Shown piece after piece: positions 6,001-44,738 of a DNA stretch of 64,000 bases. Both the position numbers and the translations under genes were made by a program. Under the pieces are notes generated by a model. That model ran no database searches, was not told where the DNA came from, and saw nothing but the letters and a program-made list of their open reading frames with translations. Within the stretch, counting starts at the first letter, position 1, and every line of letters begins with the position of its first letter. The stretch comes from Oopsacas minuta (taxonomy: Eukaryota; Animalia; Porifera), in contig JAKMXF010000066.1 of assembly GCA_024704765.1 (NCBI GenBank), positions 1,299,883-1,363,882 of the forward strand, given 5' to 3'.

Positions 6001-9000
6001 TTTGGGTAAGTATTGGGTGGATATTGGCTTGGGTACTCATCGTGTAAAATGTTCAGTCCATCAAGATTTCAAACTGATCATCATTGCTGATTCGAAAACA
6101 GTTCGTAAGCAGTTTCCCTCAGCGTTGATCAACCGATTTGAAAAGCACACTCTTAAAGTTTGTTCAATACTATCGGAAGAAGAACGAGCAGTGGCTGAAA
6201 ATTTATCTCTTTGGGCTGAAAGGTTTGTGAAGATCGATTTAAGTGGTCTTATCGACATAAAATATCATGTTGAAGATTGTATTGTTGGATTTCAAGCAGA
6301 CACAGCATATATGTTGATATATTCGTTAGGCGGTTTGCGTCTGTCAGAAAATCAGCCACAATACAAAGCATCAATGATGGAGTTGTCAAAGAGTAAACTT
6401 TTACAGATGGCGACACCTGATTCGGTATTAAGGCTAAGCAAAACAAAATTACAATGGGAAGCCAATACCCTTTTAAATACTTATTTGACACTCCCTTTAC
6501 AAGATTTACAACACTATTTCCAGCATATTGTAAAGTCTTCGAATTATTTCTCATTAATTACTACACATTCAATGCTACTGTCGGAATCTGAAGTTTTTGA
6601 CATTGAAAATTCTTTATCTGAGCAACAATGTTCTGTATCTTTGTATCTCCTTTATCTCTTACAATTCCAAACGAATTTACAGTTTTCAACTCGTATCAAT
6701 GAATTGTTGAATAGTCAAAATTCGAAGGCAGTGAATAACATTATTCTGATACAATGTGATAATGGTAATTTGCATTCTGATCTCATTTCATGTGCAAGAC
6801 ACCATATCATTGAGCAATTTGAAATGTTAAATCCTGATCAATCTCGTAGGATCTTCTTTGTCATCGTTATCCGCATGTCGCGTAAATCGAACACTCTTTC
6901 AAGTTATTGTGGAGGTGTTTGGGAAACGATTCACATTGATGAATTAAGACCCCCAGAATTGACAATTCTACCATCTTTTACCGATCTAATTCACCTTTCA
7001 TTATCAGATATATTTTCTGGTAGGACTAAGGTGAGTCTTAAAATAATTTTCAAAAGTTTTTATATTGAGCTAATTCACTTGTAACTGTGCTATGATAAGA
7101 TTATTTCGTTTAACATAGTAGTATATTGAAATATCAATGAATATTGCTTTTATTAATTTTCAGTTCTCAGGAGCCAAACTAAATATGAGTAATATATTTT
7201 GTTGTAATCAGAGGGGTCAGATGGGGCCAAATCACCCTAATCTAATCCTTATCGCTTTATCACAGGACCATACATCCAAATCCAAAAAATATAGCTATCA
7301 AAATCAAACATATGTGAAATCAAAGAAATTCAAAAATTTCAGGGATCTAATGAATTCCTTTGGACTTTGGAGACTCCAAATCCTTCCGAAATTCATGGAT
7401 TGTGGATTTTATGGATTGCAAATCCATGGCATCCACTATCCATGGTCCATCCGTCCCCTCTGGTTATAATATTTAAACTCAGTTGAAATTACAGGCTCAG
7501 GAATTGTATCCTAATTTGCAAGTCACCTTCAACCAAGGTACAAGACTTCTAGCTACAGTTCAACCAGCGTTTTCACTCCTATATGAACGAAACGGTAGCC
7601 ATGTACGAACACTAAGAAGAATTGAACAATTTATATCGTTACTTCATGATTCCAATTTTGCAGGTAAGTACCATTAAACTTTTCTTAAGTATGTTTCTAT
7701 ATATACTCCAGTCGCCAGAAGTTAAATATTGAATTGTCGTATAAGGAAATTTTATGATGTCTTATTGATCTCTAAGGTGTTCTAAGCCAGAATCCATCGG
7801 GTGCTACGCTGACAACCTTGAGCAATTTTTTTAATTTACACAGACCATCACTAATATATTCATCTGACCACTCAAACGAAACGAATTTTACACTGATTAC
7901 GAAATTGAAAGTTTGATTAGAATGAAGTATAGAATTTTGTAGTATTTTACGTATTTTGGTTCCAAAATGGTTAAAATGCGTTAAGATTGATAGATTATAT
8001 TTTCATTGCAATTCTTATCTAATTTTCTGGCTCAGAACATGCTAGAGATCAAGAAACCATTAAAAATTTCATTCAATGATAACACAATTTTGCCCTCTGG
8101 CGACTGGACTAACAGACTTCAATTTATGCTAACAGCACAACACCACGTAACACTGGATAATGAGTACAATTATCATCAACAGTCACCTACTCTGGTCTAT
8201 TTCTTATTTTACACTTCGATTCAATTATAGATATATCTTCAAAGATATGCGAGATAATTTCTTATCTCTTGGACAACAATTCTATATCTGTATATTCAAA
8301 AGATTGGTCACGCTTTGCAGCGTTTGATGAGCACCTAATTCAGTCAGCAGGAACATTCAGAAAGGCACTGTCTAAAGAAATAAACATCGCTCTCATCCCT
8401 CTTGTAGCAGAAACTTTAGCATACTTAGATCGGAATGGTAATATTGAGTTAATCTTCATGCACACGAAACCAGCAATTCAGGAAATATGGAGAAGTATTT
8501 TCATTGATCAACATTGCTTTTTCAATCATTTGCAATCATTATCTCCCCTTATAACTGATATGAAAAGGTCTGTTCCAATAATTAGCGATGGATGGAATGG
8601 TAATTATTTTCAAGCCAGGTTTCCTTTCTCTTGGATTATTGTTAGTACAATAAATGAAGTAAGGAATAACATGAAAATGCATTCAGGTATGATATACATT
8701 TTGACTAATATTCACTATTCAGTAAACAATCACTTAGATTTTTGGGGCAGCTCCTTTAGGGAGCTGCGCTAATGGCATGGACGATGTGCGACATCCATCC
8801 GTCCGTCCCTGCGGCCGTGCGAAATCTAGCAGTCGAATTAACATGCAAATTAGCATATATATACATTTTGGGTCGGAGATTTGCACCTTGGGCATGAATT
8901 TTTTCTAAAGTGAATATTTCGCACCTTTATTCTATACATGTTCATTATTAGGTAATACCGAAATTTTCGCTGATTTTGAGGAAGCTTTTGAGAAAACTAT

Positions 9001-12000
9001 TATTGGTGAACTAATTTCATCGGTCGATATTCAATTTGAGGACAGTACAGTTGCAATCTGTTATTTGGAAGATTTCATCAACTTAATAATATACCCAAAG
9101 GACGTTTCTGAACACAAGGTAATTATAATCAATAATTCATTCTGATGGGGACAATTAATTACATTGTCCATTCTTTAGGCACACTTCTTACTAATATTGA
9201 ATGGAGTGTTGAATTTGAAACGACGAATTGTACAAGGATCTGACAACCTTGAAGATGAGAACACAGAGTCGAGTTCAATAAAACTAACCATTCCAATGAT
9301 TCACGTTGCCTATGATATGTTAGTTGATAGAATTGGCTTCATCAAACAAGCATTCACCCTTAAGTTTGACGGAAAAGATGAAATTAAGACTCATATAGAT
9401 TTTGCAATAAATAATGATACTCAGGGAAAACTTGGGGAATTCCTCGATTCTCTGATCTTTGAAGCCATCATAAAAGATTGCAAACCTGATTTAAATATAA
9501 TTTTGACAGAAGTTGATTGGGAAATTTGGGTTTCGAGAGTAAGAAGATGTCAGACAATCATTGAATCAAATTTCAATATTGTCCTTTTGGATCAGGAGAA
9601 GAATCGAAACATTAGGTAGAGTTGTCTTTTATGATTGCTATGAATTGTAATTATGATTTATTTTTTTGAAAATCTTACATGTATGTAGAACTGAATGGAA
9701 TTGCATTCAAGCAATACTAATTTTCGTTACAAACTTTGTTTTACTGACAGGCTATGACATGAAAGCTTCATTAAGACAATTTCACAGGGTGAGTAATAAC
9801 CTAATATGTATATTAACAACACACTTATCAATGTTGAATCCTCGAAATTATGTCACATCTAGATGATTTTTATCAAAGATACAAACTTTCACTCAGAGAA
9901 AACTATGAAAAGGATTTTTGCAGTTTTGAATGCATTAACACGTAAAATACACACGGATATTAGGTAAGTTTTAACCTAATACTTACTTTCATAGATCCAT
10001 CCTTTTTATCATTAATTGCCCTGCTTTATTTTAATAGCGAACAACTGAATATCAAATGTTTGAAGTGCAAAAAGCCTCCTGCAGATACTATTGCCTTAGC
10101 TTGTTTCCATTTCCGATGCAGAACTTGCCTTCCTAGCATTACTTCAGATTCCAAATGTCCAGAGTGTATAGATGATATTTATGCTACAGTAAAGGGCAGT
10201 GAGCGAGAGCATTTTGTAAAGATTTGTAGGTAGGTGTTTCTAATCAGATAAGTGAATTTTGATTTTCAATAGTTTACATATATGTGTCGCAACTTGCAAT
10301 TTATTGCACTACACATTTTCTCAATTATTAGAAATTGTTTAGTATGGATTACTGTAGGGAAATGTTAGAGAAACAACGAAAATTCAGGGAACAATCAACC
10401 AATTTCGTCATGGAGCTTTTATCCACAATAACTTTTGCAAGTTTTGGAAATGAGGGCAAAGAGAATGGTTTGATAGAATATCTGGTTAGTTATATTGCAT
10501 TAGATCATAATGTTCTTGAAAACCTTCCAGATGCCAAATCGGACAATGTTATGCTCTTCCAAGAGGGTATTTTAAAGCCTTCCCCTACAGTTAGGCTATT
10601 CTTGCTTCAGCTTCTAATTAAAAACAGGTTTATCTACTTATTATTTACGGCTGCAATTATTGTTTTTATCAATTCACCTTTGGATGTAGATTTCATTTGC
10701 TTCGTAGCAAACTAGCTGAGTATATGGAAATGACGTTGAGTCATTTACAACTTAAGCAGAAATCTCATGGACATGAGATGCTAGTTATTTTTGTGCAATG
10801 CTTTGAGGTATTATTTCAAACTTTATAATTCATGAGTATTCTTTATTTTGTACATATAGGACTACTTTCAATCAAAATGCTTTACTTTGCCAACAGAATC
10901 ATTAAGGATCCAATATATTTCAACCCTTTGCCATACTGATCAAAGATTAGAAAACTTTGGACCACTTTACCAAAGTGATCTATCCCTCGCGTATATTGAA
11001 TCGGTAGCATTGGTAAGATTTGTTGCCTTAGTTATCTGTCAATGGATAATAGACAAGTTTGACCTTAAGCGTGAGGCCATCAACATACTGATTGACCAAA
11101 AGGAAACTGTACAACGTATTGAGCAGAAAAAAGTTCAGTTGGTGGTCAATTTCAAACGACTCATCAAATCATTTGAAGATTTGTCTCAGTCCGTGAAGTG
11201 TTCTCAGTATTTGCATTTTTTTTTCATGAAAGCACTGTATTCGCATTTAGGTTGGGGAGGAATTAAATCTATCTTGTGTGTTGAAGAATTGAAAGGGGTA
11301 ATACCTTCGAAATGTTTTCACTTAGGCAATGTAAGCACTTTAACTGTATAATATCAGAAAACTCTTGACTGATATATTTTCATAGTTCGATGGACGATTG
11401 GATCTGTTTTCCAGTTACGGGCCACTTTATCAAGATGCGAGAAAAATAATCCGCTATCTAATAACCCAAGTTGACACGCAGGATATAAACAACTGGATTA
11501 AGGAACAGAATCAGAAAGTATATACATTTAAACAATGCTTTAGGCAAGCTCTGTTTACTATTTCTATCTATTTAGAAGGAGAGTAGAATTGTGTTACAAC
11601 AAAGTTTGATATTTGCTGTGTTTACAGACATATACACTGAGAACCTTAAAGGTGGTCACCAACCCATGTTCCCAAACAAAGTAAGCTTCCTAAAATATAG
11701 ATGGAGCTCAAAATATTACGTTCCCTTTTTTAGATTCAAAAATTTGTCAAAACTATAGAAGAGAAATATCCTACAATGCCAAACGAACTATTTGAACTTC
11801 TAGAACAACTATTTCTAAATAGGCTTTTTAATGGTCGGATTCAAGAACTCATGTTGACGCCCAATTCTCATGGATATACTCCAACAATTGCAGGAATTCT
11901 GTGTCACATCGGTATATTGTTACACTATGCATTAGATCAAGAAATAGAAAATTTTCTAGCACCGCTTACACTTATTTATATGGACCCAGGGAAATTATGC

Positions 12001-15000
12001 CAAAAATTATTTCCAACTATGGAAAACATGGAACCTTCTGCTAGCTTTGTCAAGATGGCAATTTTAGAGGAAGGTAGATGGTATGAATGTCCAAATGGAC
12101 ATTCGTATTTTATTGGAGAAGTAAGTGATTCAGGATGTATACGTATATGTAAATATATTGCAGGATTACTTTTCTATTTTTAGTGTGGAAAACCATGGAC
12201 TGCTTACTCTTGCCCAGAATGCGGGATTACCATTGGAGGGACTTTACATAAGTTACATCAGGGAAATTTAGAACAAAAACGATACACAGGTCATATATTA
12301 GGATGTCCATCCAAACGATCTCATTTAAAGTCTGGAATAAGGTTTGTACATTTTTAAGCATTATTTTTTACCTTTCTTGATGCAGTAGATGCCGGATATA
12401 AGAACACCGGTTATACGAACATGCCAGATATTTGAACCACAACTTGAATTACGGAATCTTTTGTATTCTACTCCATGGAATTTTTACCGGTTATAAGAAC
12501 ATGCCGGATATAAGAATGTCATAATGGAAAACGATGACTATATGCCTCAATATACATTATGCCGGTTATAAGAGCACTCTTAGTGTAGTACTAAAATTGG
12601 TTCTCATTACCAGTATGTTTGTAGAATTCGGCATAATATATAATAGATATGAGAATACTTTTCTTTAATATGGTTTCTACATCCAAATGGTTTAAATGAA
12701 GTGTTTCCATAACCGCATCTACTATATACTACATACCGGTTATGAGAACATTATTTCCAGTTCCCGACGATGTTCTTATAACCGGCGCGGCATTCACAGT
12801 ATAACTAAATTTACTCAGTATTCAATCCTTAGACGATTATCAGCTACTTCAGCTTCTGTGATTAGAGCTCTAATGCATGGAATATTCATATGGGCATCTG
12901 CAGTAAAGTTTTCTTTCGATCCTACGAAACTTCTTTCCCTTGTAGAATATCCTGGAAATATTCATATTTCCCAATTTTTCTTTCAACATATGCTTAATGA
13001 TATTTATGACATTTCATGTATTACTGGTAAGGATTTTGAAGAATCTGCATTGATTATACATATGGTAATAGACAACATAATGAGTGATCATGAAAATATT
13101 GGTAAGTGGAATAATTTATAAATTTATCAATGTTCTATTCATACAACTCATCCGATAGTACAAATTGATGCCTCACTTACTTCAAATGATAATCGAGAGA
13201 CTTGGGAATTCTTTTTCGACAGATACTTCATATCTCCAATTCTTGTAGATGTAGATAAATTACTGCAGGAGAAACTGATCTATGTTCTAAATGATGTTGG
13301 AATGTTGAACCATACCATATTTAGGTGAGATTAAATATAGATCCTTCGATCATATGCGCTAATTCCCCTGGGTTATATAGCAAGCTTCGATAATATCTAT
13401 CTTAGGTCACTATATGAGAAAGACATCAATCCAGCTCAGCATGAAGGTTATCTTTGGAGATTTCGGAGCAAAATCGACTTTCAACACTTTTCAAAAGCAT
13501 TTAATTCACAAGGACTAGTTATTGCAGTTCAGTATCCATTATTAGAGAAATTTATTCGAGAGGAGCATTTATTAGCTGCAACAAAGTTTCTACCAGCTAT
13601 TGTAAAATTGCGAATAAAACTTAGCCAAAAGATGTATAAATGCATTAATAATGTTAAGCCACAAGACACGATTCAGTGCTTTTTAGTAAAGCTCCAAGAA
13701 GGTTGGTTATACGTGACTAGTCACTATTTTGCTATTCTTTCAGTTTAGAATATTCTCAATTCTTAGAGAAAGGTGAGAGTGTTATGGAAGAACTTAGGCA
13801 TCTCGTAAATGAATTCGCAGCTTGTTGGAAGTTAGTCGGAAGCGAAGTGATACAAAGAAATGGACTTAGAATTCAATTTTCAGAAATACAATCCAATATC
13901 ACACCAATACTATTCATTATGCCTACAACAAAAGGAGAAAAATCTATATTAGTGGCATTGGCAGAACTTTTAATAAATACCCATAATAGTTTTATTGCAG
14001 AACAGAAAAAATATTCTATCTTACCAGAATATGGACAGTAAGTTATATTTAGAATTATGAGTGACATCGTTTGTAGGAAACATTAGTTCATTTAATTTGT
14101 ATCCAGACAGGCAGAAGATACAGTTTCCCTTCCTCAACTCTCACAAAACCATATGATTGACTACCAAGGGCACCTAGATAAGCTTATTCTTTCTAACGCA
14201 CGATATTCGCTCCAATTTGGACTAGGCACTATGGTACAATATGATTTTTCTAACATAGAAAGACAGTTGTTCGACAACTTTGTACTTTCAAAGCCTTTTA
14301 TTATCTGGGATCGATCCAAGCCAGGCTATTCTTTAAACAATGTAGCCGAGACAATGTTTCACAGGATAAAGGAATTAATTCCACAGGTATAGATCATTCG
14401 AGCTTAGAGATATGTATTATCTCTTTGAAATAGTGATCAGAGTAAATATAGTGTTGTATAGATACTTTTGGCCTATGCACTTGGGCTAATATACATTGAT
14501 TTCAGGGTGTTATCCAGGTGTATGCGGCGTGGCTACAGGCGCATAAATTTTGGAAATGTATGTCTAAGCGTAAGAATATTTCTCTTTAGGAGTAAACTCA
14601 TATACCGTAATACAAAATGTACAGTCTAGGCGTATGAAATGAAATAGAATCCATTTCTAGGCGTATGGTCCTGAGAAACTGGATTAAACCCTTGTTAATT
14701 CCATCACTTATATTTATTAATTATACGTAAACCTCCGAGATACGGCATAATCCGGAGAAAAATTTGTGCCGTGATTTTGGATTAAAAATTCCTATCCGGG
14801 ATTTATTAATTGCCGTATCTTGGAGGGTTGCCTCATGTCAGAGGTGCCGCTTTGGGAGGTTTACCTCTATACAAATGCTAGAATTATAAATATTTTCCCA
14901 GATGTCAGTTAAAGATCTGGGATAAATGTTCTAAGGATGGATTGATATTATCCAGGCTCTGTATTTTAATAGGAAAAGCTAGATGAAGCATTAGCAAAAA

Positions 15001-18823: not shown

Positions 18824-21312
18824 ATGACATCATTACTGTTTCTGCTACTGGTCTGTTCTATCATAAGAGTTCATACACAATCAGTGGGTGATAGTATTAC
18901 AATAGATCTACCATTTGGATCTGTAAAGGGATATTCTAACGGAGATTCTTGGGAGTTCTACGGAATACCATTCGCAGCTCCTCCAGTAGGAAATCTACGC
19001 TGGCAGCCTCCTTCAAATTTTACTCCTTGGAGTGGATCTACACTTGATGCTAAAGACCCACCACCTGCCTGTATTCAAAAGTGCGAATTTGGAATAATTG
19101 GTTGTGCTGCCAATATGAGTGAGGATTGTCTCTACCTAAATATATTCATACCAATCTCCTGGAGACCAGGATCAATTAGGAGCTACGATATACTGCTATT
19201 TATATATGGAGGAGGATTTCATGAAGGAACTTCAGGCTGTTTGCTCTACGACTCCAGGTCTGTACTTAGTAATTCTTAAGATATAATTTGGAGAAAATGT
19301 GGTAACAAGCATACGAATAGCACAAATAAACAGATGAAAGAGCATGTAACCTGTTTAATAAACAGCATAACTGGAAAATTATTTGAGGTTCTTCCATTGA
19401 CTTGTAGTTGTCTATTTGTTATTTATACTACCTTCTAGGTTTCTTGCAAACTTCACTGATACCATCATTGTCACTTTCAACTATCGCGTTGGGGCGCTAG
19501 GTTTCCTTAGAATTCCATTATTTGATATCTATGGGAACATGGGTTTTGTAGATCAGCGTATGGCAATGCAATGGGTTAAGGACTATATTTCATATTTCGG
19601 AGGAAGAGGAAAAACAACTTTGTTTGGACAGAGTGCAGGAGCTATTTCTATTGGGGCTCATGTCGCATCGCCTCTATCCAAAGGACTCTTCGATAATATT
19701 ATTTTGGAAAGTGACGGCTGGACAGTTCCATTTCGAGATACATTCAATGCAGAATTATTAGCGGCTGAATACAGTGTGGTAAGAAATGTAGTTTAGAATA
19801 GTAACGTCGTAAGATTATTCAGAAAATGGTCTAGTGAAAATACTATATCATATAGTGAGTAGAATTTTCCTGTGACAACTTGATATTCTATTTCCAAGTC
19901 GAAATGACGTCATCTCATTTCTTACTTAACAATTTTGTTAAGAAAGGCTCATATGAATTGACTATTTATTCAGTATTTAAAACTCTGTCAAGAGTCAATT
20001 CATACATTTACGCTTACAGAACTTATTCCTTGGGATCTAGGGCTATTTTCATGCAAAATATCAAAATTTGTTATGATAATATATACACTCTCCAGAGTTA
20101 TCGTTGCAACCATGGATGGCACATTTTTGCTGACATTCATCAATAACTTGACAATCTTTAATGTTATAGCCCAATAGTCGTGGAAACATGTAGTATATAC
20201 CCGATTTCTCATATCCTGATAATACATTCTGAAACGATATCTCTGTATGTGAGAGTCTTTTTTTCATAGAACAATATCACAAGTTACTCTTATTCTAATT
20301 GTAATTGAATTTATTGGAGTTGATGTGAAATATTTATTAGATATTTCATAATTTCCTATAGAAGCTGGACTGTTTTACCAAAAGCTGTTTTCACAGTAGA
20401 ACAGCTGATGAAATACTTGCAGCTCAACTTCCGATTATCCCAATTGCATTTTCATTCAACATACTGATTGACTTCGTTCCATGGTCTCCTATTATAGACA
20501 ACATAAATTTAATGAATCAACCATATGCAGTTGTAATTGAGATGGCGAAAAATGGAACATTACCTCCTGCTATTATGGGCACAACGACAGATGAAGGGTA
20601 TCTCTTCATGGAACCAATTGAAAGAGAATCACCTATCAAGGGTAAGTTATTCTACGATGCAGTTATGCTTGCAACATTTCTAGAGGATTCTGTATCAGTA
20701 AACGATCAATACAACTCATTTTATGGAGCTACAGATAATTATTTACAAAGATTATCACAGATAATAGGAGATTATCTATTCGGTTGTTCCACAAGGAGTA
20801 TTTTAAATGCAATCTCAAGTGCTGGACAAAAAGATGTATGGAAGTATATATGGGACAGAACTATAACGTATAATGCTTCAGATAATATATGTTATAACAG
20901 AGCATGTCACGGAGCAGAACTCTTCTATGTCTTTGGTGCTGTGAGTCTATGGGGTCAACAGTTCACTCCTAATGACTTGAACTTGTCCAGACAGGTACAG
21001 ACATACTGGGGGAACATGGCAAAGAGCAATGACCCTAATATTGGGCCAGTTGGAACAGGATTGTATCCAGCCTGGCCTAGATATGACGTAAGAACTGGAG
21101 CACAGATGTTCTTTGAAGACCCAATTGGTAGACTATCGTTCAATTTCAGTAATGGTATATGTGATCATCTAGACACCATAGGGTATGATAGGTCAAATGT
21201 ATTCGGAAACTCATCAGTCGTTAGCAGTTCTATACTGCTCATGGCTGTAGGTGAGTTAGTATTGACATCATCATTCTATATACACCCGAATTACAAACCA
21301 AATGCAGGTTGA
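18824..21312 (+). CDS. Secreted type-B carboxylesterase; exons 18824-19257, 19439-19778, 20362-21312
   Basis: Signal peptide; GIPFAAPPVGNLRWQPP; SEDCLYLN; YGGGF oxyanion hole; catalytic GQSAG, TTTDEG (Glu) and CHGAEL (His). Splice phases are consistent. Confidence 0.93.
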
Positions 21313-31284: not shown

Positions 31285-34200
31285 ATGCTTGGACGACAGC
31301 CAACTCATGTGGATGTTTCTGACTCAATCCTACAGAAAGGTGAGATTAGAATACTCCAGGATAAACTTTTGGGAATGTTAAAATATTATTTGATAATAGT
31401 ATATGGGTCAAACTTTATTTATATATCAGATCTCCAAAGTCCAGTTGCATTAAAGAAATATCTACCAAAAAATGTGTTGAAAACCTTTGATCCACATTAT
31501 TCCGATATAAAAATTAAAGAGCTTTTTGATTCACCTAATACTCACGTTTTTCAGGCTGCACTAAGAACTCCATGGTTGAAAAATTATCCTCCATTCAATA
31601 ATTCATCAATGGCAGAAATACTTATCTATGCCATGTTAAACTCGCCTACTAACCTTCCCATAATAGAATGCCTCATGCATTCCCACTCAGAGAGCCTTGA
31701 TTGGAGTTATTTAGATAGCAATAATAACTCAATTTTCCATATCGCTCTATTACAAAATTCTCTTAGTAATGAAAAAATTCTAGAATTGCTTCAACTGAAA
31801 GACAATAAGCTAGAAACACACATCAATCATGTCAATATACAAAACGAAACACTGCTTTCCATTTCACTCAAAGGAAATTATTCTGAAACACGTCAAATAA
31901 TTACTGAAGCATTATTGAATGCTGGTGCATGCATTTTTATTCAAAAGGAAGATTTTTACGTTTTACCAAACTTCGATGTAAGTGTAGGTCATTTGAATCA
32001 ACATGTAGCTATTTTAGTTAACACACCAATAGGGAACAGTAGCATTTTAACACTCCTTGACAAGCCTAACGAAATACGATACTTCAAAAATGACTTTGTG
32101 ACATTCAAAAGGTACGATCTCCATAAAAACGAGAACTTTGATTTCCTAAAACTTATCTTAGAGTTTCCTTGCCCTACTCTATTGCAGGTTGTATTATATA
32201 ACATTATAGTCAGCATTAACCAAAACTTAGAATGCGGCAGCAGTTTGTTACATTTAGCTGCTGAATTTGGTCATCCCTTAATGCTACTCACAGTACTTTC
32301 CAGAGAATATATAGACATTTGCCTAACAGAACACAGAACTAATAACAATGCATTTCACAAAGCTATGCTTGGAAAAAACGGTAATAATCTTGAAATGTTG
32401 CTTAAACACAAGGATACGAAAATCACCACTTGTCTGAACGCTAAAAACAGTGATAATTTGACTCCATTAGAGCTAGCTATTAGTATTGAATTCTATGCTG
32501 GAATATCTCTTATCTTAGAAAATAATGTTACCCTACGTACAGAAGCATGGTTACAAAATGTGTCAAATGCGATTAAAGATAAAAGGATCGAAATTTTGAA
32601 AATATTCCTGAATTTTTTTGCCTATCATACCTCAGCTAACAAACCACTTCATGAGTTATTTAATTCACATAATCACTCCATCCTTCACATAGCTGTATTA
32701 CATTATCACGAAGAATGCTTCGTGCTTGTTATGCAAAAATATCTGGAAAATAATCTTTTGAAACAAGAATTTACTCAATTACGCTTCAGTCTTGAATGTC
32801 AACAGTTTGCTGCCACAGAGAAATTTTTGAGAGCAGGTGCTTGTAATTTAATCCAAGGTTACTCGTGTTATTTCCATATTGTAAGATGTTGTCACGATGA
32901 AGTTATTTTGGATCGATTATTTAATATTCTTCATCCGTTTCCAACTTACAATCAAGATGAGCAAATGTTCGATCATGAGCACAATACACTGTTTCATTAC
33001 AGTATCAAATGTAAGAATGGCGTAGCAGTTAAATTATTAGGGACAAATACTCCATTTTCACAACTTTCTGAACGTGAGACTACTGGAAATTCGGTCCTAC
33101 ATACTATCGCGTGTATCAACAGTTTGGGAGTGACACAAAAATTTGTATCCGTCTTGCAAGAACACAGGTTAACCCATGGTTACTTGGAGTTTATTAATTT
33201 ACAAGACACTAGTAATATGTATTCTGCATTGATGATAGCAGCTCTTGAAAATAATCTATCAATTTTTAATGTATTAATAAAAGAGAATGCGTCTCTTGAT
33301 TTAGTTGACAGGAATAATAACACTGTACTTCATATTATCGTGGAGAGAGGAAATCTTGAATTTTTCAAGATTGTTATGAACACCATTGACAATTCAAATA
33401 TTATACCTCTACGATATCTATACAATACACTAAACCATAATGACGTTTCACCAATCGAAAAGGCTGTGTTAAATGCGGAGATAGAAATTCTTGAATCATT
33501 TCGGAAAAATCATAGTCTTGACAATAAGAATAGCGTGACAGGACTATCTCTTCTGCACCTTGCTGTTCTTATTAAGGATCTCGAATTTAAGACACGTGAA
33601 GAGCTAATTGACGTTTTGTTAACAGAGAAATCTCTCCTTGAAATCAAAGATAGTAAAGGTAGAACTCCAACAAATCTCTCTATTTCTGAAAGATATGTAG
33701 ATTCTTTGAAAATTTTGTTAACATTTGATCCTGATTTATCCGCCATCGATAACGAAAGCTTTACAATACTGCATAAAGCAGTCAAGCATTATGAAAAGGA
33801 CATTTTTACTATCCTAATATCACATATAACCAGTAGCCACAGTAGGAATATTTTACAGTCCAAAGATTGTGATGCTTTCCACTTTGCCATAAAATGTCTT
33901 AAATATGAACCTATCGAGCAATTATTGGAACAACAACCCTCTCTCATGAGTACTGAAATCGAAGGCAATACAGTTATCCATACAGCTTGTGAATTTCCCA
34001 ATGCAATTAATATTCTTATACTATTGCTAAAATACGTTCAACTGCAGGGACTGACCAGTTTATTAACAAAACTCAATAATAATCAATTGACTCCACTTCT
34101 ATTTGCAATTTATCACAAAAACAAGGATGCGTGCCAGGAATTGATCAAACAAAAAGCTAATTTATCCTACTCAATCACAAATGGTACACAAGTATTTCAT

Positions 34201-37200
34201 GATATTGTCAACGACTCTAAGTTACTATTTTGTGAATATAAGAACGAATTGTATATCGGATACTCATTTAGTCAGAAAAATATCCATCGGATACTTTCTC
34301 CATTGAATGACCTAACTAATGCAGTTATTCACACGAATTCTACAATAAAAATTGTAAAAAATGTAAATACGAAATTGATTGAGGCAACCATCATACAACC
34401 ATCTTCCCAGCTTCTTCAGATTCTCCTTTCTCAAGTAAGTGCGACTTTGAAAAATGAAAATTTAAAAACCACAATATATATCCCAGCAGTGAGAATAGGA
34501 TCTATTCGTGTCATTAACTATCTTATCCAAGAGAAAATCACTGTTCAGGATTACTTCAACATCGACAACGGCAGTTTATTGTATGAATCAATCAAACATA
34601 GAAATGAAGAAGTTTTTATACAATTATGTGAACATGTAGTGAATCAAAGAAGTGCCAGCTTTCAGAAGGTTGGAGGAATACTTCTCCAAATTCAGTCCAC
34701 TCATCCACTGCTTTTATGTATAGACTTAAACAAACCGAAAATTTTCAATTATCTTTTGGATGAAAAGTTCCAATTTTCACTCACTTTCTTACAACATCAG
34801 GACAATACCATAATACATTTGATCCTAAACAGTAACAATAGAAATGTATTTCTGAGGTTATTCATTGAACGAATTCAAAGTAACAAATTGATACTGTCTC
34901 TTAACAATACTCCTCTAGTCGATTGTTATACAAAAAATTCAAAAATTACTCCTTTACATCTCTGTGCACAATACTTTCCAGAATGCTTAAGCATGATATT
35001 AGAGCTGAATCCTGATCCAACCATAGCTGATAGTTCAGGTAATACAGCATTGCATTTAGCTGTAAATGCTGACAGTCTTAACAGTACGAAACTAATTCTC
35101 GATCAGTATAAGAATACAAGTGGATTAAGCGAGATGGTCAATGCCACGAATTTGATGGGACTCACGCCTCTCCACAACGCTGTAGATAAGGCCTCTGAAG
35201 ATATCGTGAGGTTGCTACTTGATAACAATGCAAACATCTACGCTATTGACGAAGATAAACGAACTGTATTCCACCATAGCGTTTTCATTAAAGATAGGAA
35301 TAAATCAGTTTCGATAATGAAAATACTCTTGGAATATAATTCATTGAATCAACAACAAAGTACTGGTCTTGTGCGGGGAGTAGACTCAGAGAGATGTACT
35401 GCACTTCATTTAGCGATAAAATGCCAAAATTTGAAGGTAATTGAATATTTATTGGAACAACCAATAGACATCTCTATTACAAACTGTGATGAAAACACAA
35501 TACTACACTTAGCAGTGATGGTAAAATATACAGATTTAGTTGTGAAGTCAATATTGAGGGCTGTTTTTGAGGGATCATTGAAGAATATTCATAATATATC
35601 CTCTACTGACTTTATTAACATGCGAAATTCGCAGGGAAAATCAGCCTTAAGTTTGTCTATGGAATGTGCAGATCTAAATAAAATAGAAAGTATACTAGCT
35701 TATGAGCCTCGACTTGATTCTACAGATATGGATGGGAACTCTCCATTGCATATTGTAGTGCAATTTAACAGTATTAAATGCTTGAATACACTATTGAAAA
35801 AAATAAAATCGCGAAACTCGCAAAGCATTATGAGATTCTTGAACGCCGTTAATAATAAAGGTCTTTCCCCACTTCACCATGCCATAGCATGCAATAATTA
35901 TGAATCAGCAGAAATTCTTTGTAATGAAGGTGCTCAGCTATCTCTTACATCACCAAATGGGACCACAACATTATGCCACGGTATAGATGGTCTCAAATTG
36001 AGATTTATGTGTATACAACCTGGCTATTTTAAGGAATATCAGTACTATATCTGTTATACTAGAGATACTAGAAATAGTATTGTTATTGCTTCTCTGTTAC
36101 CTGAATTGAGTACAAAAGTATTCCAGGATTCAGCTAAGCTTAAATTAGTTACGAAATTGCCAGAGCATGCAATACAGTTCATAATCAAATGTAGTTGTAC
36201 TGAACCTTTGGAGGCTTTAATAGCGAGCAAATTCCTTGACTTTTCGAAGGACAAAACCTGGGATCTATATTGGAAGGTTGCTGATAATTCGAGCATGCTT
36301 GTGACAAACTATCTCTTTCAAAATTATCCAGATAAGATGAAATGCTCTAAGAGTCTCAAAATGCTCGAAAAAGCCGTAATAATTAATGACAACACGAAAA
36401 TAATCGAGAACACCTTGAATAAGTTTCCACTACTTGATAAACTTGATGAACAAGAAATTCATTCAATACTCAAGACCGTCCTAGAACTCAGCATTTCTAA
36501 TGACTCAACAACAAATCTAAAGACTTTGTTAGCTCGAAGGGCAAAACTTAACTATTTATATGGAGATGAAAAGGATCAAACTATCTTACATATTATAGTT
36601 GAGAAAGACAAAAATATTGAATTCTTCACCTGTATCCTTGAGGAAATTTTTACAAGAGAAGAAGGTGAATTCCGTCAAAGCACATTTATAGATGGCAAAT
36701 CAATGATTGACCACCAAAATAACAAAGGTAAAACTGCACTTCATCTCTGTATAGAAAAGAAAAGACACGATTTGTTACGAATAATTCTCAAACATTGCCA
36801 AAAAATAATGTTGAAAGACTTGAATGATAATACAATTGTCCATCTAGCTGCAAGTACAGGAAATTTGTTGATAGCTAAGGAAATATTCCAGAAAATATCG
36901 ACAGATGAATATCCATATTATTTCGACTCCGAGAATATCCACGGTTGTACACCACTTCATTTGGCTACAAGTGTAGGTAGCAAAGATATTTGTAAAAACT
37001 TATTAGAGAAAGGAGCATCTCTATTCTCAATTGATAAAGATGATCGAACAATGTTTCATCATGCAATGCTTGTTGAAAATAAAGAGAATCGACTGGAAAC
37101 ACTAACCTTCCTTTTAGAAGAATTTCCTAACAAGAAAGATGATCGATCGAAGAACTTGTTAAGAAAACAAGATAGAGATGGATGTACTGCTCTACATAAT

Positions 37201-40200
37201 GCGGTAGAACATCAATACGAATCAGAAGTTGCTCTTCTTATAAAAGCAGACTCCTCTGTGATTGAATTATATGATAAAAACATGCATACACTGTTACATG
37301 CAGCAATAGCTCCAGAAATTGGTAGCCCTAAACTTTTCATTCCTAATGAGAGCATTTTTGTTGAAGTTTTCGAAATTCTCAACCTTAAACCTCGAGCCTA
37401 TGGCACGCATCAGCATGCAGTAATTTGTCAACAAGATATCCAAGGTAGAACTGCATTACATCTATCTATTGCATTTAATAACATTTTTGCCTTAAGAAAG
37501 ATCCTCTCAGTAAATCCTTGTCTTTTAATTTGTGATGAAGGCGGAAATTCAATCTTTCACGAAGCAGTAAAGAATACTGATGGTCAAGCTCTTAGAACTA
37601 TAATCCGACACATCAATACAGATGATGAAACTTTAGGGCAACTCTTTAGTACTATAAATTCACAGGGTTTACCTCCCTTGCATCTTGCAATATTACATGG
37701 AATTCTCCCTGCAATCGAATTGTTACTTGAGAAAAACGCAAGCTTATCTTTCGAAAATAGTTCTGGAGATATCACGTTATGTGACAATTTAGAAGGATTA
37801 GAACTTGAATTTTTGTTTGACACAAACTCTACTTATTACATCGGTTATCCAGTACTAAATGGCCCCAATCAATGTTGGGTTGTGACTGACTTACCAGGAC
37901 TCAGTAGGACCACTCTGACAGATCCTCAACATAAATTGATAAAACTCGATAGAAAGATCCAATTTGAAGATATAGGTATACTAACTGCTATATTAAAATG
38001 TCGTTCATACGAACCACTAGCAGCAGCTTTTAGGAAAAAATTCCTGATTGCGAATCAAAATGTTCAAACGAAAGCTTTACCATCAGTTGTAGGTGAGAAT
38101 GCTACACCTCAGGTGATGAGATATTTCCTCACTCAATTTGAGAGGGGATTTGTTTATTACAAAAATGGCGAGTGTCCTTCAATTATAGAATCAGCTGTTG
38201 CGAACAGCAATATTGAAACTCTAATCGTAGCAATCCAAGCATTACCCAATGACTTAAGTACAGAAACAGATTTGAACAAAGCGTGCCTAGATATTGTTGA
38301 TAATTTCAAAGATACATTACTACACATTGCTGTCAGGATATCTGGTAGTAATTGTGAAGAGTTGAATATTATTATTTCAAAACTTCAAGAATGTCATGAA
38401 GAAGACAAATCCTACTTTTATGCATTAAACCAAGAAGGCTATCCGCCTCTTCAACTTGCGATAGAATTGCAGAATAATCAAGCTGCTATAAAACTGGTTG
38501 AAGCATCTGCTGGATTATTGTTTCGTGATGAACAAAATCAAAGTGTACTCTCTTGTAGAAACAGTAAACTCAAGTTACGTCTTCTCCATTCGAAAGAAGT
38601 AACTTCTAATGAGATTCCTGTATTTTGGATTGGCTATCCTATTGAAATTGTTCGCAAAACTAATTGGATCGTTGCTCGTTTGCCCGACCTCGAGTTCACT
38701 GAATACATTGGAGAACAAAAGATAGAAAATGTAGACCAAATTAGTGACCAAGACTTGATTAATGCCATCTCCAAGTGCCATTCTTCAGATCCATTCAAGG
38801 CGGCCGAGGAATTAGGATTAATTGATAAAAATCCAAAAAATACTAAACATATTCAAAATGTCTTGAAGAATTCATCTAAGGAAGTTGCTGAATATTTTGT
38901 AGAACGTCTAAGATATGAAGTTTATGAAAGAATCGAAAACCAAAGTTCATTGATAGAATTCTCAGTAGAGAATCAAGATATTTCTGTCTTACATTTTCTC
39001 TTACAAAAACTCCCCAAAATTCCAGAATGGACTCCGAATATTGAGATATGTTTGAAAGGGGCACTCGAACAAAGTCTGAAAAATAGTACAGCGAATGCTT
39101 TTATACAGCTACTCAATTTCGGAGCAAACTTTAGACAAACTTATCGCGATGGAAACACACTCCTGCATTTGATAATTTCCAAAGCTAAAGACACTTCTTT
39201 TATTGATTCTCTATTGACACCTTGGAAAATGTGTCAAGTAGAAGAAAATCCTCGATTTATTGATGTACAAAATATTCATTGCATGACAGCTTTACACCTA
39301 GCTGTGAAGTTGAAAAACAAAGAGTTACTTTCAATACTGTTGACTTTCCAACCTTCACTGCTAATTCATGGTCCTGAAGGAAACACACCATTGCATTTAG
39401 CCATCGAGACGGATGATTTTGAGATTATAGAAGAAATAATTACCTATAGTAAAAGTAATTTAGAAATAATTAACGCGAAAAACGAGAAAATGCGTACTCC
39501 TCTTCATTTAGCCGTTAGGAAAGGACAGAATGTCACTAAACTACTCTTAAAATCAAAGCCTGACATTTATTCTCAAGATTGTGATCAAAACACTGTACTT
39601 CACCATGCTGTTGATTCTAAGAATAGAGGGATCATTGATATAATTTTAGATTTTGAAGCCAAAAACCACCCAAAAAAATGTAACCTCTATTCCATTCGCA
39701 ATGAGCTTTGCCAAACTCCCCTACACCTTGCTGTAACCAAATCGGATTTAGATGTGGTCACTCGATTGTTAGACTTCCCTTCTGTTCTTTCTACAACAGA
39801 CTGCAACACACAAACTCCTCTTCATCTAGCGGTTATCCACGAAAATGTATTCGAGGTTATTATCAATGCCACAATGCAATTTCAACAATCAAATGTCGTT
39901 GAAGTGTCGCACAAAAATCATATTATCAATTTACAAGATGTTAATGGAAAAACAGCATTACATCTTAGTATCGAACACGATCACAGTAAGGCTTTTGAAA
40001 GATTGTTAGCTGAGCAATGTCTACTAGATATTCTGGATAAATCTGGTAATAATATCTTACATTATTCCGTGAGAGCACGTTCTAACCCTACTTACCTGAA
40101 CACACTTATTCTTAAACTTCAAAATAGCTCCGAACATTATGTAATGTACACTCAAAAGAATAAAGATGGTCTACCTCCATTACATTATGCGATTACACAG

Positions 40201-43200
40201 TGTAACATAACAGCTATACAATCTCTAATCAATGCTAAAGTTAAATTGGCATTGAAAAGTGAACAGGAAGGTTTTACACTCTGTCACCTGAAAGGAACTC
40301 TATCACTTGATGTTTTCAAGTATAAGTACGATAATTTGAAATTCTGGACAGGATTTGAGGTCAAAGATGAGAAATCAACTTTTATGGTTTTATCTGAGTT
40401 ACCCAATCTAGAGAAAACTATTATTCACGAACTTAAGGCAATTAAAGTAACAAAACTTGAAAAGTTGGATAAAGAATCTCTTTCCACAATAGCATCATGT
40501 CCATGTTCTGAACCACTTCATGCTGTGTTTCACAAACATAAGCTTACTTTAGATAAAAAGCTTTTCGATAATTCAGATATTTCTGAAATTGTTGCTAAAC
40601 ATGCTGCACCAAAATCAATCGAATTAATCCTCAAAAAGGACAATTCAACTCTTATTCAAGGAAAGGACAATCATCTCTCAATGTTAGAATCAGCTGTTTC
40701 GAATCCAAATTTGGAAGGTTTAAAATTTGTAATAAATTCTATTTCAAAATATTATCCTAATCCCAAAACAGAATCAATATCAAAAATTGAATTACAGTGT
40801 ATTCAAAGCTCATTTTACCTGAGTTTAGCCAACAAAAATACAGACGCATTATCCATACTACTTGACTACCACTTGCCTTTCAAACTGTTATATAGAGGGG
40901 ATAATACATTACTCCATCTAATGATTATGAATTTTGTTTCTCCTGAATTTATTCATGCTCTATTTCTCAGCATCAACAATCAAATCATTAATCTTGAATG
41001 TCCTTATATTGACTTAAGGAATGCTAAAGGAGAGACAGCATTACAACTCAGCATTACAAAAGGACCAATTTTAAATGTGCAAACACTGTTGAAGTATAAT
41101 CCTGATATCTTTTATCAAGACAATGACCGTAATACAAGTCTGCACACTGCAGCTAAGCAAGCAAACACAGAATATGTTGAATGTATCGTAAACGCGGTTG
41201 AGAAGTCTAACCTCAAAATTCTTCTAGATTCGGTTAATTCAAATTCACAAACTCCACTCCATACTTCAGTAATGAATGGCAATTGTAACGTAACAAGATA
41301 TCTGCTAAATTCTGATGCATTCTATCAGACGAGATCCTCTTACGAATACTGTATATTACATCATGCTGTTGAGCTGAAAGATGAGAAGGAACGTAGAGAG
41401 ATGATAGATCTCATATTAGAGTATGAAAATACATTTCACTGTAAGGAAGTCAGTCTTACTACTTATCAAGATGATCTTGGGTATACATCACTTATCAATG
41501 CCATTGTCTTGCGGTATCAGGATGCTGTTGCAAAATTAATTGGATTTGTTGAAACATTGAGGATTTGTGATAATTCAGGATCTTCACCATTACATAATGC
41601 TGTAAAGTCAAATGATGTTGAAATATTCGATATTATCCTAAAGGCAATTTTAGACAGAGAAGATCAAGAAACCAGTTGGTTAGATTACAGGTTAGTCTGC
41701 TACAGAGATAATAAACACCAAACACCTCTACATGTAAGCATAAATACACACAATATTCATGCACTTAAACAACTTTTACTCTCAAAGCCCTGTCTAGATA
41801 CAATTGATTTAGAAGGAAACACTTTACTGCACACAGCAATTAGTCTGGGACATCAAGATTGCTTGGAGATACTACTAACTGAATATTCACATCGTTTTAG
41901 TACTGACTACGCTTATTTCGTATATATGCGAAATTCGAAAGAATTACCTCCATTACAATTTGCAATCAAACAAAAGAGGGTAAAATGTATTGAAATCCTA
42001 TTGAAGAATGGTGTTAACCTCGCGTTTTGTAATTTCTGCGGTGATAGATCATTAGCTGATGGATTAGATAGCCTTTCACTTTCCCTTGTAGAATACAAAG
42101 AAGATGGATACATCTATTGGGTAGGCTATGAATTCTTTGCTGAAAAGAAATTGTGTTGGGTGATATCTTCTTTGCCAAACCTCGACAAAACAATATTGAA
42201 AAGAGATAGTTCAAATATTGTTAAGATTAATAGATTTAATTCAGTTTATTTAGAAGCAGTTAGTAAATCAAATTATTTTGAGCCTTTAAATGCAGCATTA
42301 AGAAACAATATATTATCATTTGATACGAGTTTAGAAGGAAGAAGAGCTGTGGAAAATTGTTTCGCAATACGGCACTAAACAATCACTGCGATGCCTTCTT
42401 TCCAAAATGAAGTCTAACCTGTTCACTAGATTGGACGAAATGGATTCAATCATTGAATATGCTATTCCAAACACTGACAATGACGCATTGGAATTCCTAC
42501 TCGAGAGCCTCCCCGAATTTCATGAAGAGCTCATTCCCAAATGTGAAGGAAGTGAGAAATATTCCGAAAATATTCAGATATGTTTTTGTTTTCGAAGGTC
42601 GTTTGAAAAGAGTATTTTGAATCAAACTCCAGATGCACTAATTTCTCTCCTCAAACATTTTCCAAAGCTGGACTACACATATGGTGAAAGAGACAATACA
42701 TTAATACACCTTATGATTGTCCAAGATAAATCTTGTGAATTTATTAATCGCGTTTTAGAATGGATCTCTCAATCTATCAAATTGACGAGTAAATATTCTA
42801 GTGTACTAGATTTGAAAAATTCTTTAGGACAAACTATGTTACATTCTTGTATACATGCTAAACAATGGGATAATTTGAATGTTCTCTTGAAACACAAACC
42901 AGATCTTTATGTGCAAGATATTAATGGTGAAACCTCGCTACATTATGCTGTTAAAACAGAAGATTTACTTTATGTACAAATTATTCATGAAAATGCCCCC
43001 AATCAGCAAACCTTTCTGCCAATAAGAAACTTGAATGGCGACACAGCTCTGCATCTAGCCATACAAAATGGTAATATCGAAGTAACCAATTTTCTTCTTC
43101 AATCAAAATCTCCATTCTATCCACATAAAGACGATAAATCAACAATACTACATATAGCAGTTGAATTTCTAGATTCAGTAAAACGAATGGCCCTTATTGA

Positions 43201-43777
43201 AACAATTTTGAAAAATGAGCCTGAACCTTCTTCAGGTTCTGACAGAATTATTACACGTCTGAAAAATCATAACGGCTACACGCCATTACATCTAGCTATA
43301 GAACGGAAATATTCTGACGTAGTAAACATTCTTTTAGGTGTTGATATAGGAGCAATGTATATCCGAGATGATAATGAGCGAACACCCCTTCATCTTGCAA
43401 TAATCCCATCATTCTCAGATGGTCAAAAATGTACAGAGGTATCCACAATTCATCAACCGATCCTCGACAGCGTACTGAATGCTTGTGAAAAATTGGATGG
43501 AAAGCACGAAGAAAACACCCCTTGCAGTGCAAAACACTTAATTTGTATTCAAGATAAGCATAAAAGAACTGCTATGCACGATGCTATACAACATCTGAAT
43601 GTTTATGCATTTACAGAACTTCTAAAAACAGGTTCATGTCTAGATATCCCAGATGAAGAAGGTAATATACTGACCCATGAGGCTGTTAAAAACCCTGATG
43701 ATATCACCTATCGGATATTACTAGTTGAGGAGTTGAAGAGGAGATATCCAGATACACTATATGATTGTTTCCAATGA
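31285..43777 (+). CDS. Giant ankyrin-repeat protein with ~590-aa super-repeats; one frameshift near 42335; ~4,160 aa if joined
   Basis: ORF 31285-42378 plus ORF 42407-43777, whose frame is open from 42335 and continues the repeat pattern. Dozens of GxTPLHxA-type ankyrin motifs. Possible upstream micro-exon at 30607-30634. Could be a pseudogene or contain an assembly error. Confidence 0.85.
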
Positions 43778-43989
43778 CTTGTGGCAAGAATTGATCTTCA
43801 TGAGATATGTATGTTATGATAAATTACAAAACATTTATTGCTACCTTTTTCCTATTTATATGACGATCTTCCTATATTTTATCTTCTTGTATATTCCATT
43901 GTGTCTTCCATTGTATTTCCCTTCTCCCAAATGTGAATCTGAATTATTCCTCTATGACACTGATAAAGATCGCGGGACAGTTGGCAAGG

Positions 43990-44242
43990 ATGCACCAGCA
44001 GATTGACCGATTTTTTAGCATCCAAAATATAATCGGCCAAATTATTCTTCATTGTCACATTTCGGGCCAATTCTGGACGGATTTTCATTATATCTGTGCG
44101 CATATATAAACCGAAAACGCAAGGTACATGGAAAAAGAAAATTGTCAGAAGGCTTCGAATGAAACCACGTATGAGCCTGTAGCTCCAAATTTTGCTGATT
44201 TTATGCATGCTTTATAAAATTTCGGTAAATCTGCTGGTGCAT
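43990..44242. mobile_element. MITE-like element, 253 bp
   Basis: Inverted ends ATGCACCAGCAGATT(G/T)ACCGA (20/21). Confidence 0.6.
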
Positions 44243-44738
44243 AGTGGAATTTTCAGGAATCCAATATTCTCCAATGAAAAACAATGCATCCTCGAATCCA
44301 TTATATCATTTTTATGATATATTGTGAAAGCTTCCTATTAACTCAACTGAATATCAACTGTATTTGGTTTCAATATTGATTTTTTCGACCTGGAAATATT
44401 TTTTAAATGTGGAATAATTTTAGAAGAATTTCATTGATCATAATAATATACGAAAATTGATTATTGCTACAATAAATAATCTACATTATGAGCTACGCGT
44501 TAGCTGTAATTTGAATCCACTTCATTGCAGATTGCACTTCTTATTTATCCCTGGTGCCTAAAATATTGTCGATTCCAGGAGGTCCTTATATTCCGTAATT
44601 AATGGGTCAGGTAAGAGTTCATGAGCTGACCCGTCTGACCATTTGGCAAGCCTGCTGTAATTGCAGAAATGCACAATATGGTTATCTAATATATAACAAT
44701 AGATGATGCGGGATTATAGGCCGATTTCTATAAACGAT

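Follow-up and report, generated by a model that had tools for sequence, protein, structure and literature searches.

Ankyrin solenoids are a textbook candidate for a protein gating spring. NOMPC (TRPN; PDB 5VKQ) and TRPA1 each carry a long N-terminal ankyrin solenoid together with a TRP pore, and the ~28-29 ankyrin repeats of NOMPC are said to be the most of any TRP (PMC4494053); TRP-N has been reported as absent from the sponges examined (PMC4494053). Canonical ankyrins (AnkR, AnkB, and AnkG; PDB 4RLV and 5Y4D) combine one 24-repeat solenoid, the membrane-binding domain, with ZU5-UPA-death domains. On the TRP channels of the glass sponge Oopsacas minuta, its genome paper says no more than "many hits for TRP family proteins" (PMC10280926). 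Here, we report a giant ankyrin gene of O. minuta, located in a stretch of 64,000 nucleotides (nt) that is called the window below (GenBank assembly GCA_024704765.1, contig JAKMXF010000066.1, positions 1,299,883 to 1,363,882, forward strand), together with the family to which the gene belongs. What is new is a two-class family, in which channel-less giants (class I, including the window gene) and TRP-like channels (class II) share one array design.

The gene and the single assembly fault within it are located as follows.

31285..43777, plus strand: intronless gene for a class I (channel-less) giant ankyrin protein of ~4,163 amino acids (aa), defined by open reading frames (ORFs), Pfam, a transmembrane (TM) scan, and its conserved C-terminal end.
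42353..42356, plus strand: run of four A residues (A4) with one base too many in the assembly, creating an apparent stop at 42376-42378; identified from read-derived contigs, the paralogue, and the orthologue.

The window is gene-sparse O. minuta DNA (32-38% G+C) in which no tRNA genes were found. In the assembly, the giant gene appears as two plus-strand ORFs, 31285..42378 (3697 aa) and 42407..43777 (456 aa, frame +1), and the frame switch falls within 42334-42378. Contigs assembled from public reads were compared with positions 38400-44300, and every read-derived contig over the A4 run (four runs) had one base fewer there; in a contig from the same sample (X2 record 13), the missing base was the sole difference from the assembly. 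A contig of a second organism (X5, 90-95% identical) also lacked the extra base, the tandem paralogue in the same genome (ANK-A) reads through the site, and the orthologue P0002 (4529 aa) aligns across it without a break. The span is therefore a single ORF of ~4,163 codons once the extra A is removed, which is how a sequence-only reading of this DNA had treated it; a real stop or a pseudogene at 42376 was ruled out by the read-derived contigs and the read-through in ANK-A.

Residues 13-3709 of O. minuta KAI6659375.1 (contig JAKMXF010000066.1) match the first ORF at 100% identity, and the giant protein is a 100% match to P0023. NCBI names KAI6659375.1 "PP6 regulatory ankyrin repeat subunit A-like"; the record is truncated by the assembly error and misnamed, the name reflecting ankyrin similarity only. 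ANKRD28 (PP6 subunit A) shares with the giant its many ankyrin repeats, but it was rejected as an identity, having ~1,050 aa with ~27 ankyrin repeats and nothing else, whereas the giant is ~4 times longer, contains a super-repeat with modules, and has sponge giants and TRP-like channels as its relatives. Pfam matches to the giant were to ankyrin families only, with 33-residue repeats above the gathering score (Ank_2, 513.8 bits in 24 stretches; Ank, 317 bits). No TM-like or signal-like segment was found in the window protein, and there was no Pfam match to Ion_trans; judged by its sequence, it is a cytoplasmic protein with ~95 ankyrin repeats.

The protein is made of a super-repeat of ~590 aa, that is, a solenoid of ~14 ankyrin or ankyrin-like repeats and then a module of ~90 aa. 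Units cut from module to module are collinear over 560-590 aa (24-32% identity; E, 1e-33 to 1e-61), as had been proposed, and unit 4 is only 257 aa long. A hidden Markov model (HMM) built from the five clearest copies of the module independently found a sixth at aa 953-1045 (independent E value, iE, 2.8e-8). A family-wide core HMM, run against all six frames of the window, returned six copies (iE, 5e-14 to 4e-23) and nothing else below an iE of 0.03. The matches cover 34201-34434, 35971-36231, 37777-38043, 38554-38811, 40279-40539, and 42052-42309, at spacings of 1770, 1806, 777, 1725, and 1773 nt. The modules and the best-modeled solenoid are placed as follows.

34183..34437, plus strand: module u2 (aa 967-1051), the most degenerate significant copy; iE 2.8e-8 with an HMM excluding u2 and 5e-14 with the family HMM.
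35959..36243, plus strand: module u3 (aa 1559-1653); iE 1.4e-20, alignment A1.
37765..38052, plus strand: module u4 (aa 2161-2256), in the truncated unit of 257 aa; iE 2.6e-19.
38536..38829, plus strand: module u5 (aa 2418-2515); iE 3e-21.
40267..40551, plus strand: module u6 (aa 2995-3089), the copy modeled in three dimensions; iE 4e-23, AlphaFold2 predicted local distance difference test (pLDDT) 94.1 and predicted template modeling score (pTM) 0.88.
40552..42039, plus strand: ankyrin solenoid of unit 6, ~5 degenerate and ~9 canonical helix-pair repeats; 738-aa model, pLDDT 89.9, pTM 0.79.
42040..42321, plus strand: module u7 (aa 3586-3679); iE 3.4e-21.
31339..31575, plus strand: possible degenerate N-terminal module (aa 19-97), not significant; hhalign P 0.044, probability 1.2%.
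32029..32208, plus strand: possible degenerate module remnant (aa 249-308), not significant; hhalign P 0.017, HMM iE 16.

The sequence-only reading had counted seven copies and perhaps an eighth. Six of them stand, with anchor spacings that agree with those of the HMM matches and with the shared downstream landmarks, which are present in the family consensus. The copy at 31912-32200 and the one at the N-terminus were rejected as true module copies, neither being significant by HMM or hhalign. They may be degenerate remnants, since they give the best alternative alignments in the N-terminal region; for the N-terminal candidate, class II proteins do start with a module 55-75 aa from the N-terminus. 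Modules spaced 550-650 aa apart in an ankyrin array were found here and, in the same layout, in ~35 relatives.

These relatives fall into two classes. Class I comprises the window protein and seven further giants, with modules but no TM segment; class II comprises 19 proteins with two to five modules and four to six TM-like segments each, in which the same array is followed by a TRP-like channel. The module-bearing protein P0019 matches Ion_trans at 32.5 bits, above the Pfam threshold, and its C-terminal part matches Chlamydomonas TRP1 (PDB 6pw4) and TRPV channels in the PDB, as does that of P0161. The channel region of P0019 is 41-62% identical to 18 further giant proteins, among them the module-family members P0005, P0010, and P0011 and the O. 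minuta proteins P0152 and P0161; identity to P0161, P0005, P0010, and P0011 is 41-46%. P0161 is encoded directly downstream of ANK-A, on the same contig as the window. P0152 (3510 aa, on an 865-kb contig) is also TRP-like, with modules at aa 937, 1519, and 2178 and a precomputed Pfam Ion_trans match. A six-TM pore in the same polypeptide, as in a TRP channel, is thus a property of the class II relatives and not of the window protein.

As in NOMPC and TRPA1, the class II proteins join a long N-terminal ankyrin solenoid to a C-terminal TRP-type pore. Unlike NOMPC, they have arrays of roughly 40-70 repeats (about 95 in class I), punctuated by barrel modules, and the array is split over two genes, of which the one in the window encodes no pore. 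Identity with TRPN/NOMPC was considered and rejected: the class II channel part is closest to crTRP1 (6pw4) and TRPV rather than TRPN, it had no NOMPC match in the PDB at E ≤ 0.001 or at E ≤ 0.01, and the repeat numbers are far higher.

At each of the seven other loci, a class I gene shares its strand with a second giant ankyrin gene that starts 360-870 nt downstream. The downstream gene has been shown to bear a channel in six of these, and the remaining one is a 3872-aa gene (locus L008). On the unit profile, class I proteins end at register 582-591 and class II proteins begin at 1-4, which equals 597-600 of the next unit, and both the class I C-terminal and the class II N-terminal ends are conserved in sequence. 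Because the register at which class I ends meets that at which class II starts, each pair can be read as a single array severed at a constant position. The pair at L008 and that at L009, from two assemblies, have the same upstream neighbors (a PCI-domain gene, a P2X-receptor-like gene, and ribosomal protein S19e), so a second pair locus is also syntenic.

Spacers of the paired genes (L006, 21023-21549, and those of L001, L002, L004, L008, L009, and L010) were scanned for signals of RNA processing. A donor-like AGGTA lies 0-36 nt past the class I stop in all seven pairs, overlapping the stop codon in L010 (background rate, 0.0007 per nt), and six of the seven also have an acceptor-like TTAG or GTAG 7-16 nt ahead of the class II ATG; the window copy (43778-43815) has ATGTA in place of the donor-like motif. 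Hexactinellids have been reported to use spliced-leader trans-splicing. The sites flanking the spacer suggest that class I and class II genes may share one primary transcript, possibly processed through an intron or a trans-splice site. Translation of both classes as one ORF was rejected because, in three loci, stops interrupt the frame 4-14 codons ahead of the class II ATG, and joining of the two by splicing because the inferred spliced spacer is out of frame in four of five cases; on these grounds, two polypeptides are more likely.

As a whole, the locus is best explained by a class I giant that serves as an ankyrin arm for a TRP-like channel, a reading to which we give an even chance. The scaffold or multivalent sensor suggested by the sequence-only reading missed this main context, in which the array is the cytoplasmic part of TRP-like channels and the window gene is of the channel-less partner type. 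A free-standing multivalent scaffold or sensor is kept as a rival, though a rather unlikely one; the arm would then work alone, its barrels or grooves would bind different partners, and the link to channels would be one of shared ancestry. Such a scaffold would fit a window copy that stays open without an adjacent channel gene, units that keep their individual identity across species, as unit-specific partners would require, and the standing of long ankyrin solenoids as classic multivalent binders, with AnkB and ankyrin-1 as top structural matches. It fits poorly with the pairing of class I with a downstream giant ankyrin gene at every other locus, channel-bearing in six, and the coincidence of class I end and class II start in the unit register would be hard to explain if the products were functionally unrelated.

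The array itself is old. Units of the window protein share 44-50% identity with their same-position counterparts in the orthologue P0002 and ~25-30% with the other units of the window protein; since same-position units are closest, the array predates the split of these species and has not been homogenized. Orthologues at 45% identity retain the six-module layout. The window copy is recent, with its tandem paralogue ANK-A (L006, 7446..21022) at 96.7% nucleotide identity, that is, 3.3% divergence. Two features distinguish the window locus from that of ANK-A.

38270..38282, plus strand: junction left by the in-frame loss of 1053 nt (351 codons) that ANK-A retains; from pairwise alignment and blastn.
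43869..43973, plus strand: 35-codon relic of the partner gene for a TRP-like channel; it stems from the TM region and is 83% identical (E, 6e-13) to residues 2343-2377 of P0161.

The deletion took out the ankyrin block of unit 4, where P0002 has a full unit. The channel relic (105 nt) starts 92 nt past the stop of the giant gene, and no other trace of the rest of the channel gene was found within the window. No stops occur among the 417 mismatches with ANK-A, where ~20 would be expected (4.95% of possible changes create stops), and all seven indels of more than 1 nt are multiples of three. Of two 1-nt indels, one is the assembly error in the window and the other breaks ANK-A. The ratio of nonsynonymous to synonymous substitution rates (dN/dS) is 0.58 overall and about 1 in some 400-codon windows. 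By these comparisons, the window gene is a recent tandem duplicate of a class I gene, which has lost its channel neighbor except for the relic and whose reading frame has been kept intact by selection; the earlier claims of an old amplification and of a maintained ORF both hold.

It is very unlikely that the gene is a young duplicate decaying into a pseudogene, a functionless by-product of segmental duplication left after the loss of its partner and of an internal block. The low divergence from ANK-A, the large internal deletion, the reduction of the channel neighbor to a relic, the dN/dS values, and the frame break in the assembly would all be in keeping with decay. The frame break, however, is an assembly error, the mismatches include no stop, and every real indel, the large deletion among them, preserves the frame. 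The contigs of the second organism differ only by an in-frame 3-nt insertion, with the caveat that the window copy and ANK-A are not distinguishable in this comparison.

ANK-A is split in the assembly into ORFs of 781 and 3745 aa at L006 ~9785, where one base is missing relative to the window copy, and NCBI annotates the fragments as KAI6659363.1 and KAI6659362.1. This frame break may be another assembly error. In the X5 contigs, the 3-nt insertion lies at window position 38642, and the A run at 42353 is the corrected A3; the organism may be a close O. minuta relative that carries the same gene.

The structure of the module was predicted with AlphaFold2 from an alignment of 59 module copies, with aa 2960-3110 as the target. 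The model (pLDDT and pTM as listed for u6) is beta-rich, as the sequence-only reading had surmised of this block, and forms a five-stranded small barrel. Its order is an ankyrin repeat, the beta-hairpin of that repeat, four further strands, a helix, and an "EPLxA" helix that resembles the start of the following ankyrin repeat; the hairpin and the four strands make up the barrel (model residues ~47-100). The module is accordingly modeled as an SH3/Tudor-like barrel set between two ankyrin repeats and built onto the repeat's own hairpin. In a 738-aa model running from module through solenoid to module, ~14 helix pairs lie between the modules, and the model superposes on the solenoids of AnkB, ankyrin-1, NOMPC, and TRPA1. 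The best structural matches to the unit are canonical ankyrins (E, 1e-18), which resemble the giant in having a long uninterrupted solenoid as a multivalent cytoplasmic platform. Their single solenoid and additional domains differ from the giant, in which seven solenoid segments alternate with the barrel module and no other domain is present, and there is no orthology between the two.

Searches for known relatives of the module were negative. In Pfam, recurrent matches were to flanking ankyrin only (six copies at E ≤ 10; 59 copies at E ≤ 1); a profile search of the PDB gave no sequence match, Foldseek against the PDB gave no module match at E ≤ 0.001, and a search of the ESM Atlas by shape gave none. 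OSTF1 (3EHQ), which has an SH3 domain and ankyrin repeats, was among the top Foldseek rows, none of which reached E ≤ 0.001. DUF3656 (PF12392), suggested by a feature search of the ESM Atlas at a borderline score of 0.90, was rejected, with no Pfam match in the six copies (E ≤ 10) or the 59 (E ≤ 1) and none in the structural searches. Exhaustive structural alignment (VIA-align) returned Tudor (PcrA/UvrD), chromo (MRG15), PWWP, and SH3 barrels, on which the module core superposes over 45-52 residues (~50) with a root mean square deviation of 2.2-2.6 and Z of 3-4.2. This resemblance is weak and, as far as the model goes, would be one of fold class only. Unlike those barrels, the module is inserted between ankyrin repeats via a repeat hairpin, not carried on a linker as a separate domain, and there is no sequence signal. 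The module is a new sequence family, and the fold itself does not look new; of the undescribed domain that had been envisaged, the lack of a known family is upheld by Pfam, the PDB, Foldseek, and the literature searched, while the fold looks, at weak Z, like the common small SH3/Tudor-type barrel.

For the module taken alone, a serious possibility, somewhat short of even, is that the barrel has a purely architectural role: placed every ~14 repeats, it would be a joint to reset or brace the ankyrin superhelix and would bind no ligand. The conserved columns are mostly of core type (L, G, Y, W, I, and the LPxL turn) and include no cluster of polar residues, the position of the module within the unit never varies, and the pTM of the 738-aa model would have the modules fixed in orientation to the solenoid. 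Against a pure joint, barrels of the SH3, Tudor, chromo, and PWWP types usually serve in binding, and several conserved aromatic positions could form a pocket.

Were the class I giant indeed an arm for a TRP-like channel, the window protein would be a long springy ankyrin arm stacked end-on against a channel subunit, most likely P0161 from the same contig, with the N-terminal ankyrin repeat and module of that subunit as its docking site. The docked arm would extend or tether the cytoplasmic arm of the channel, as the 29-repeat arm does in NOMPC, and it is by analogy with NOMPC that a spring or tether role is proposed. The barrels would be rigid joints and/or regularly spaced docking sites. Several points weigh against this arrangement. 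The window copy has no adjacent channel gene, has lost an ankyrin block, and shows the dN/dS given above, and it may be on the way to another role or to having none. Reads over the locus also cover intergenic DNA and look like DNA, and are silent on expression. The similarity to SH3/Tudor folds is weak (best Z, 4.2; typical Z, 3), and no ligand site is evident in the module because its conserved positions are mostly hydrophobic core.

Glass sponges conduct calcium-dependent electrical signals through their syncytium. A bolder proposal, which we regard as unlikely, is a split giant TRP-like channel in these animals. Each subunit would have a cytoplasmic arm of ~7,000 residues with well over 100 ankyrin repeats, interrupted by a barrel every ~14 repeats; two neighboring genes, transcribed together, would encode the arm, whose halves would reassemble noncovalently at the conserved seam. 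Such an arm could serve in mechanical or flow sensing by a nerveless syncytial animal, as a gating spring of great length or as a cytoskeletal tether, and extra upstream halves such as the window gene would be interchangeable channel-tuning arms.

The taxonomic distribution, which the sequence-only reading had left between sponges and bacteria or viruses, was surveyed with the module profile against 1.84 billion representative proteins. Of 22 matches at E ≤ 0.001, 19 were ankyrin giants or fragments thereof with modules every 550-650 aa; P0016 and P0018 were short low-complexity matches that look spurious, and P0022 was marginal. The 19 come from O. minuta and four ENA assemblies (ERZ20067936, ERZ25072740, ERZ25766962, and ERZ25069837), the latter with long eukaryote-like contigs of 35-37% G+C. 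The HDAC8 gene beside one family locus is 66-84% identical to those on the family-bearing contigs of three ENA assemblies and on the O. minuta window contig (the comparison covered three of the four assemblies, all except ERZ25069837), versus ≤53% to that of any other animal and 46% to that of a demosponge, for which reason these three source assemblies read as glass-sponge-like. In the data searched, the family thus appears confined to O. minuta and assemblies of which at least three look like glass sponges, and no description of it was found in the literature searched.

A bacterial, symbiont, or viral origin was rejected in view of the ordinary animal neighbors (RNF213-like, carboxylesterase, HDAC8, and DEAD helicase genes) and the lack of tRNAs; every located family member sits on a long eukaryote-like contig. 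An NLR-like immune sensor was likewise rejected, as no NACHT, TIR, or death domain was present in any member scanned.

Two neighbors within the window were examined by domain content. A giant gene at 83-12180 (plus strand) comprises a 2333-aa ORF with a weak dynein-type AAA_5 P-loop and further plus-strand ORFs, one of which has an RZ-type zinc finger (PF20173, 28.9 bits); these domains suggest an RNF213/mysterin-like E3 ligase. At 18824-21312 (plus strand), three ORFs match consecutive parts of the carboxylesterase family (PF00135), in what looks like an ordinary three-exon esterase gene.

The family defined here has arrays several-fold longer than the TRP record of ~28-29 repeats, a new domain at a fixed period, and a conserved two-gene split at a precise point of the repeat, and the module merits a domain-family entry. 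It supplies concrete candidates for sensing and tethering in glass sponges and offers a natural system in which to study how very long repeat proteins arise and persist.

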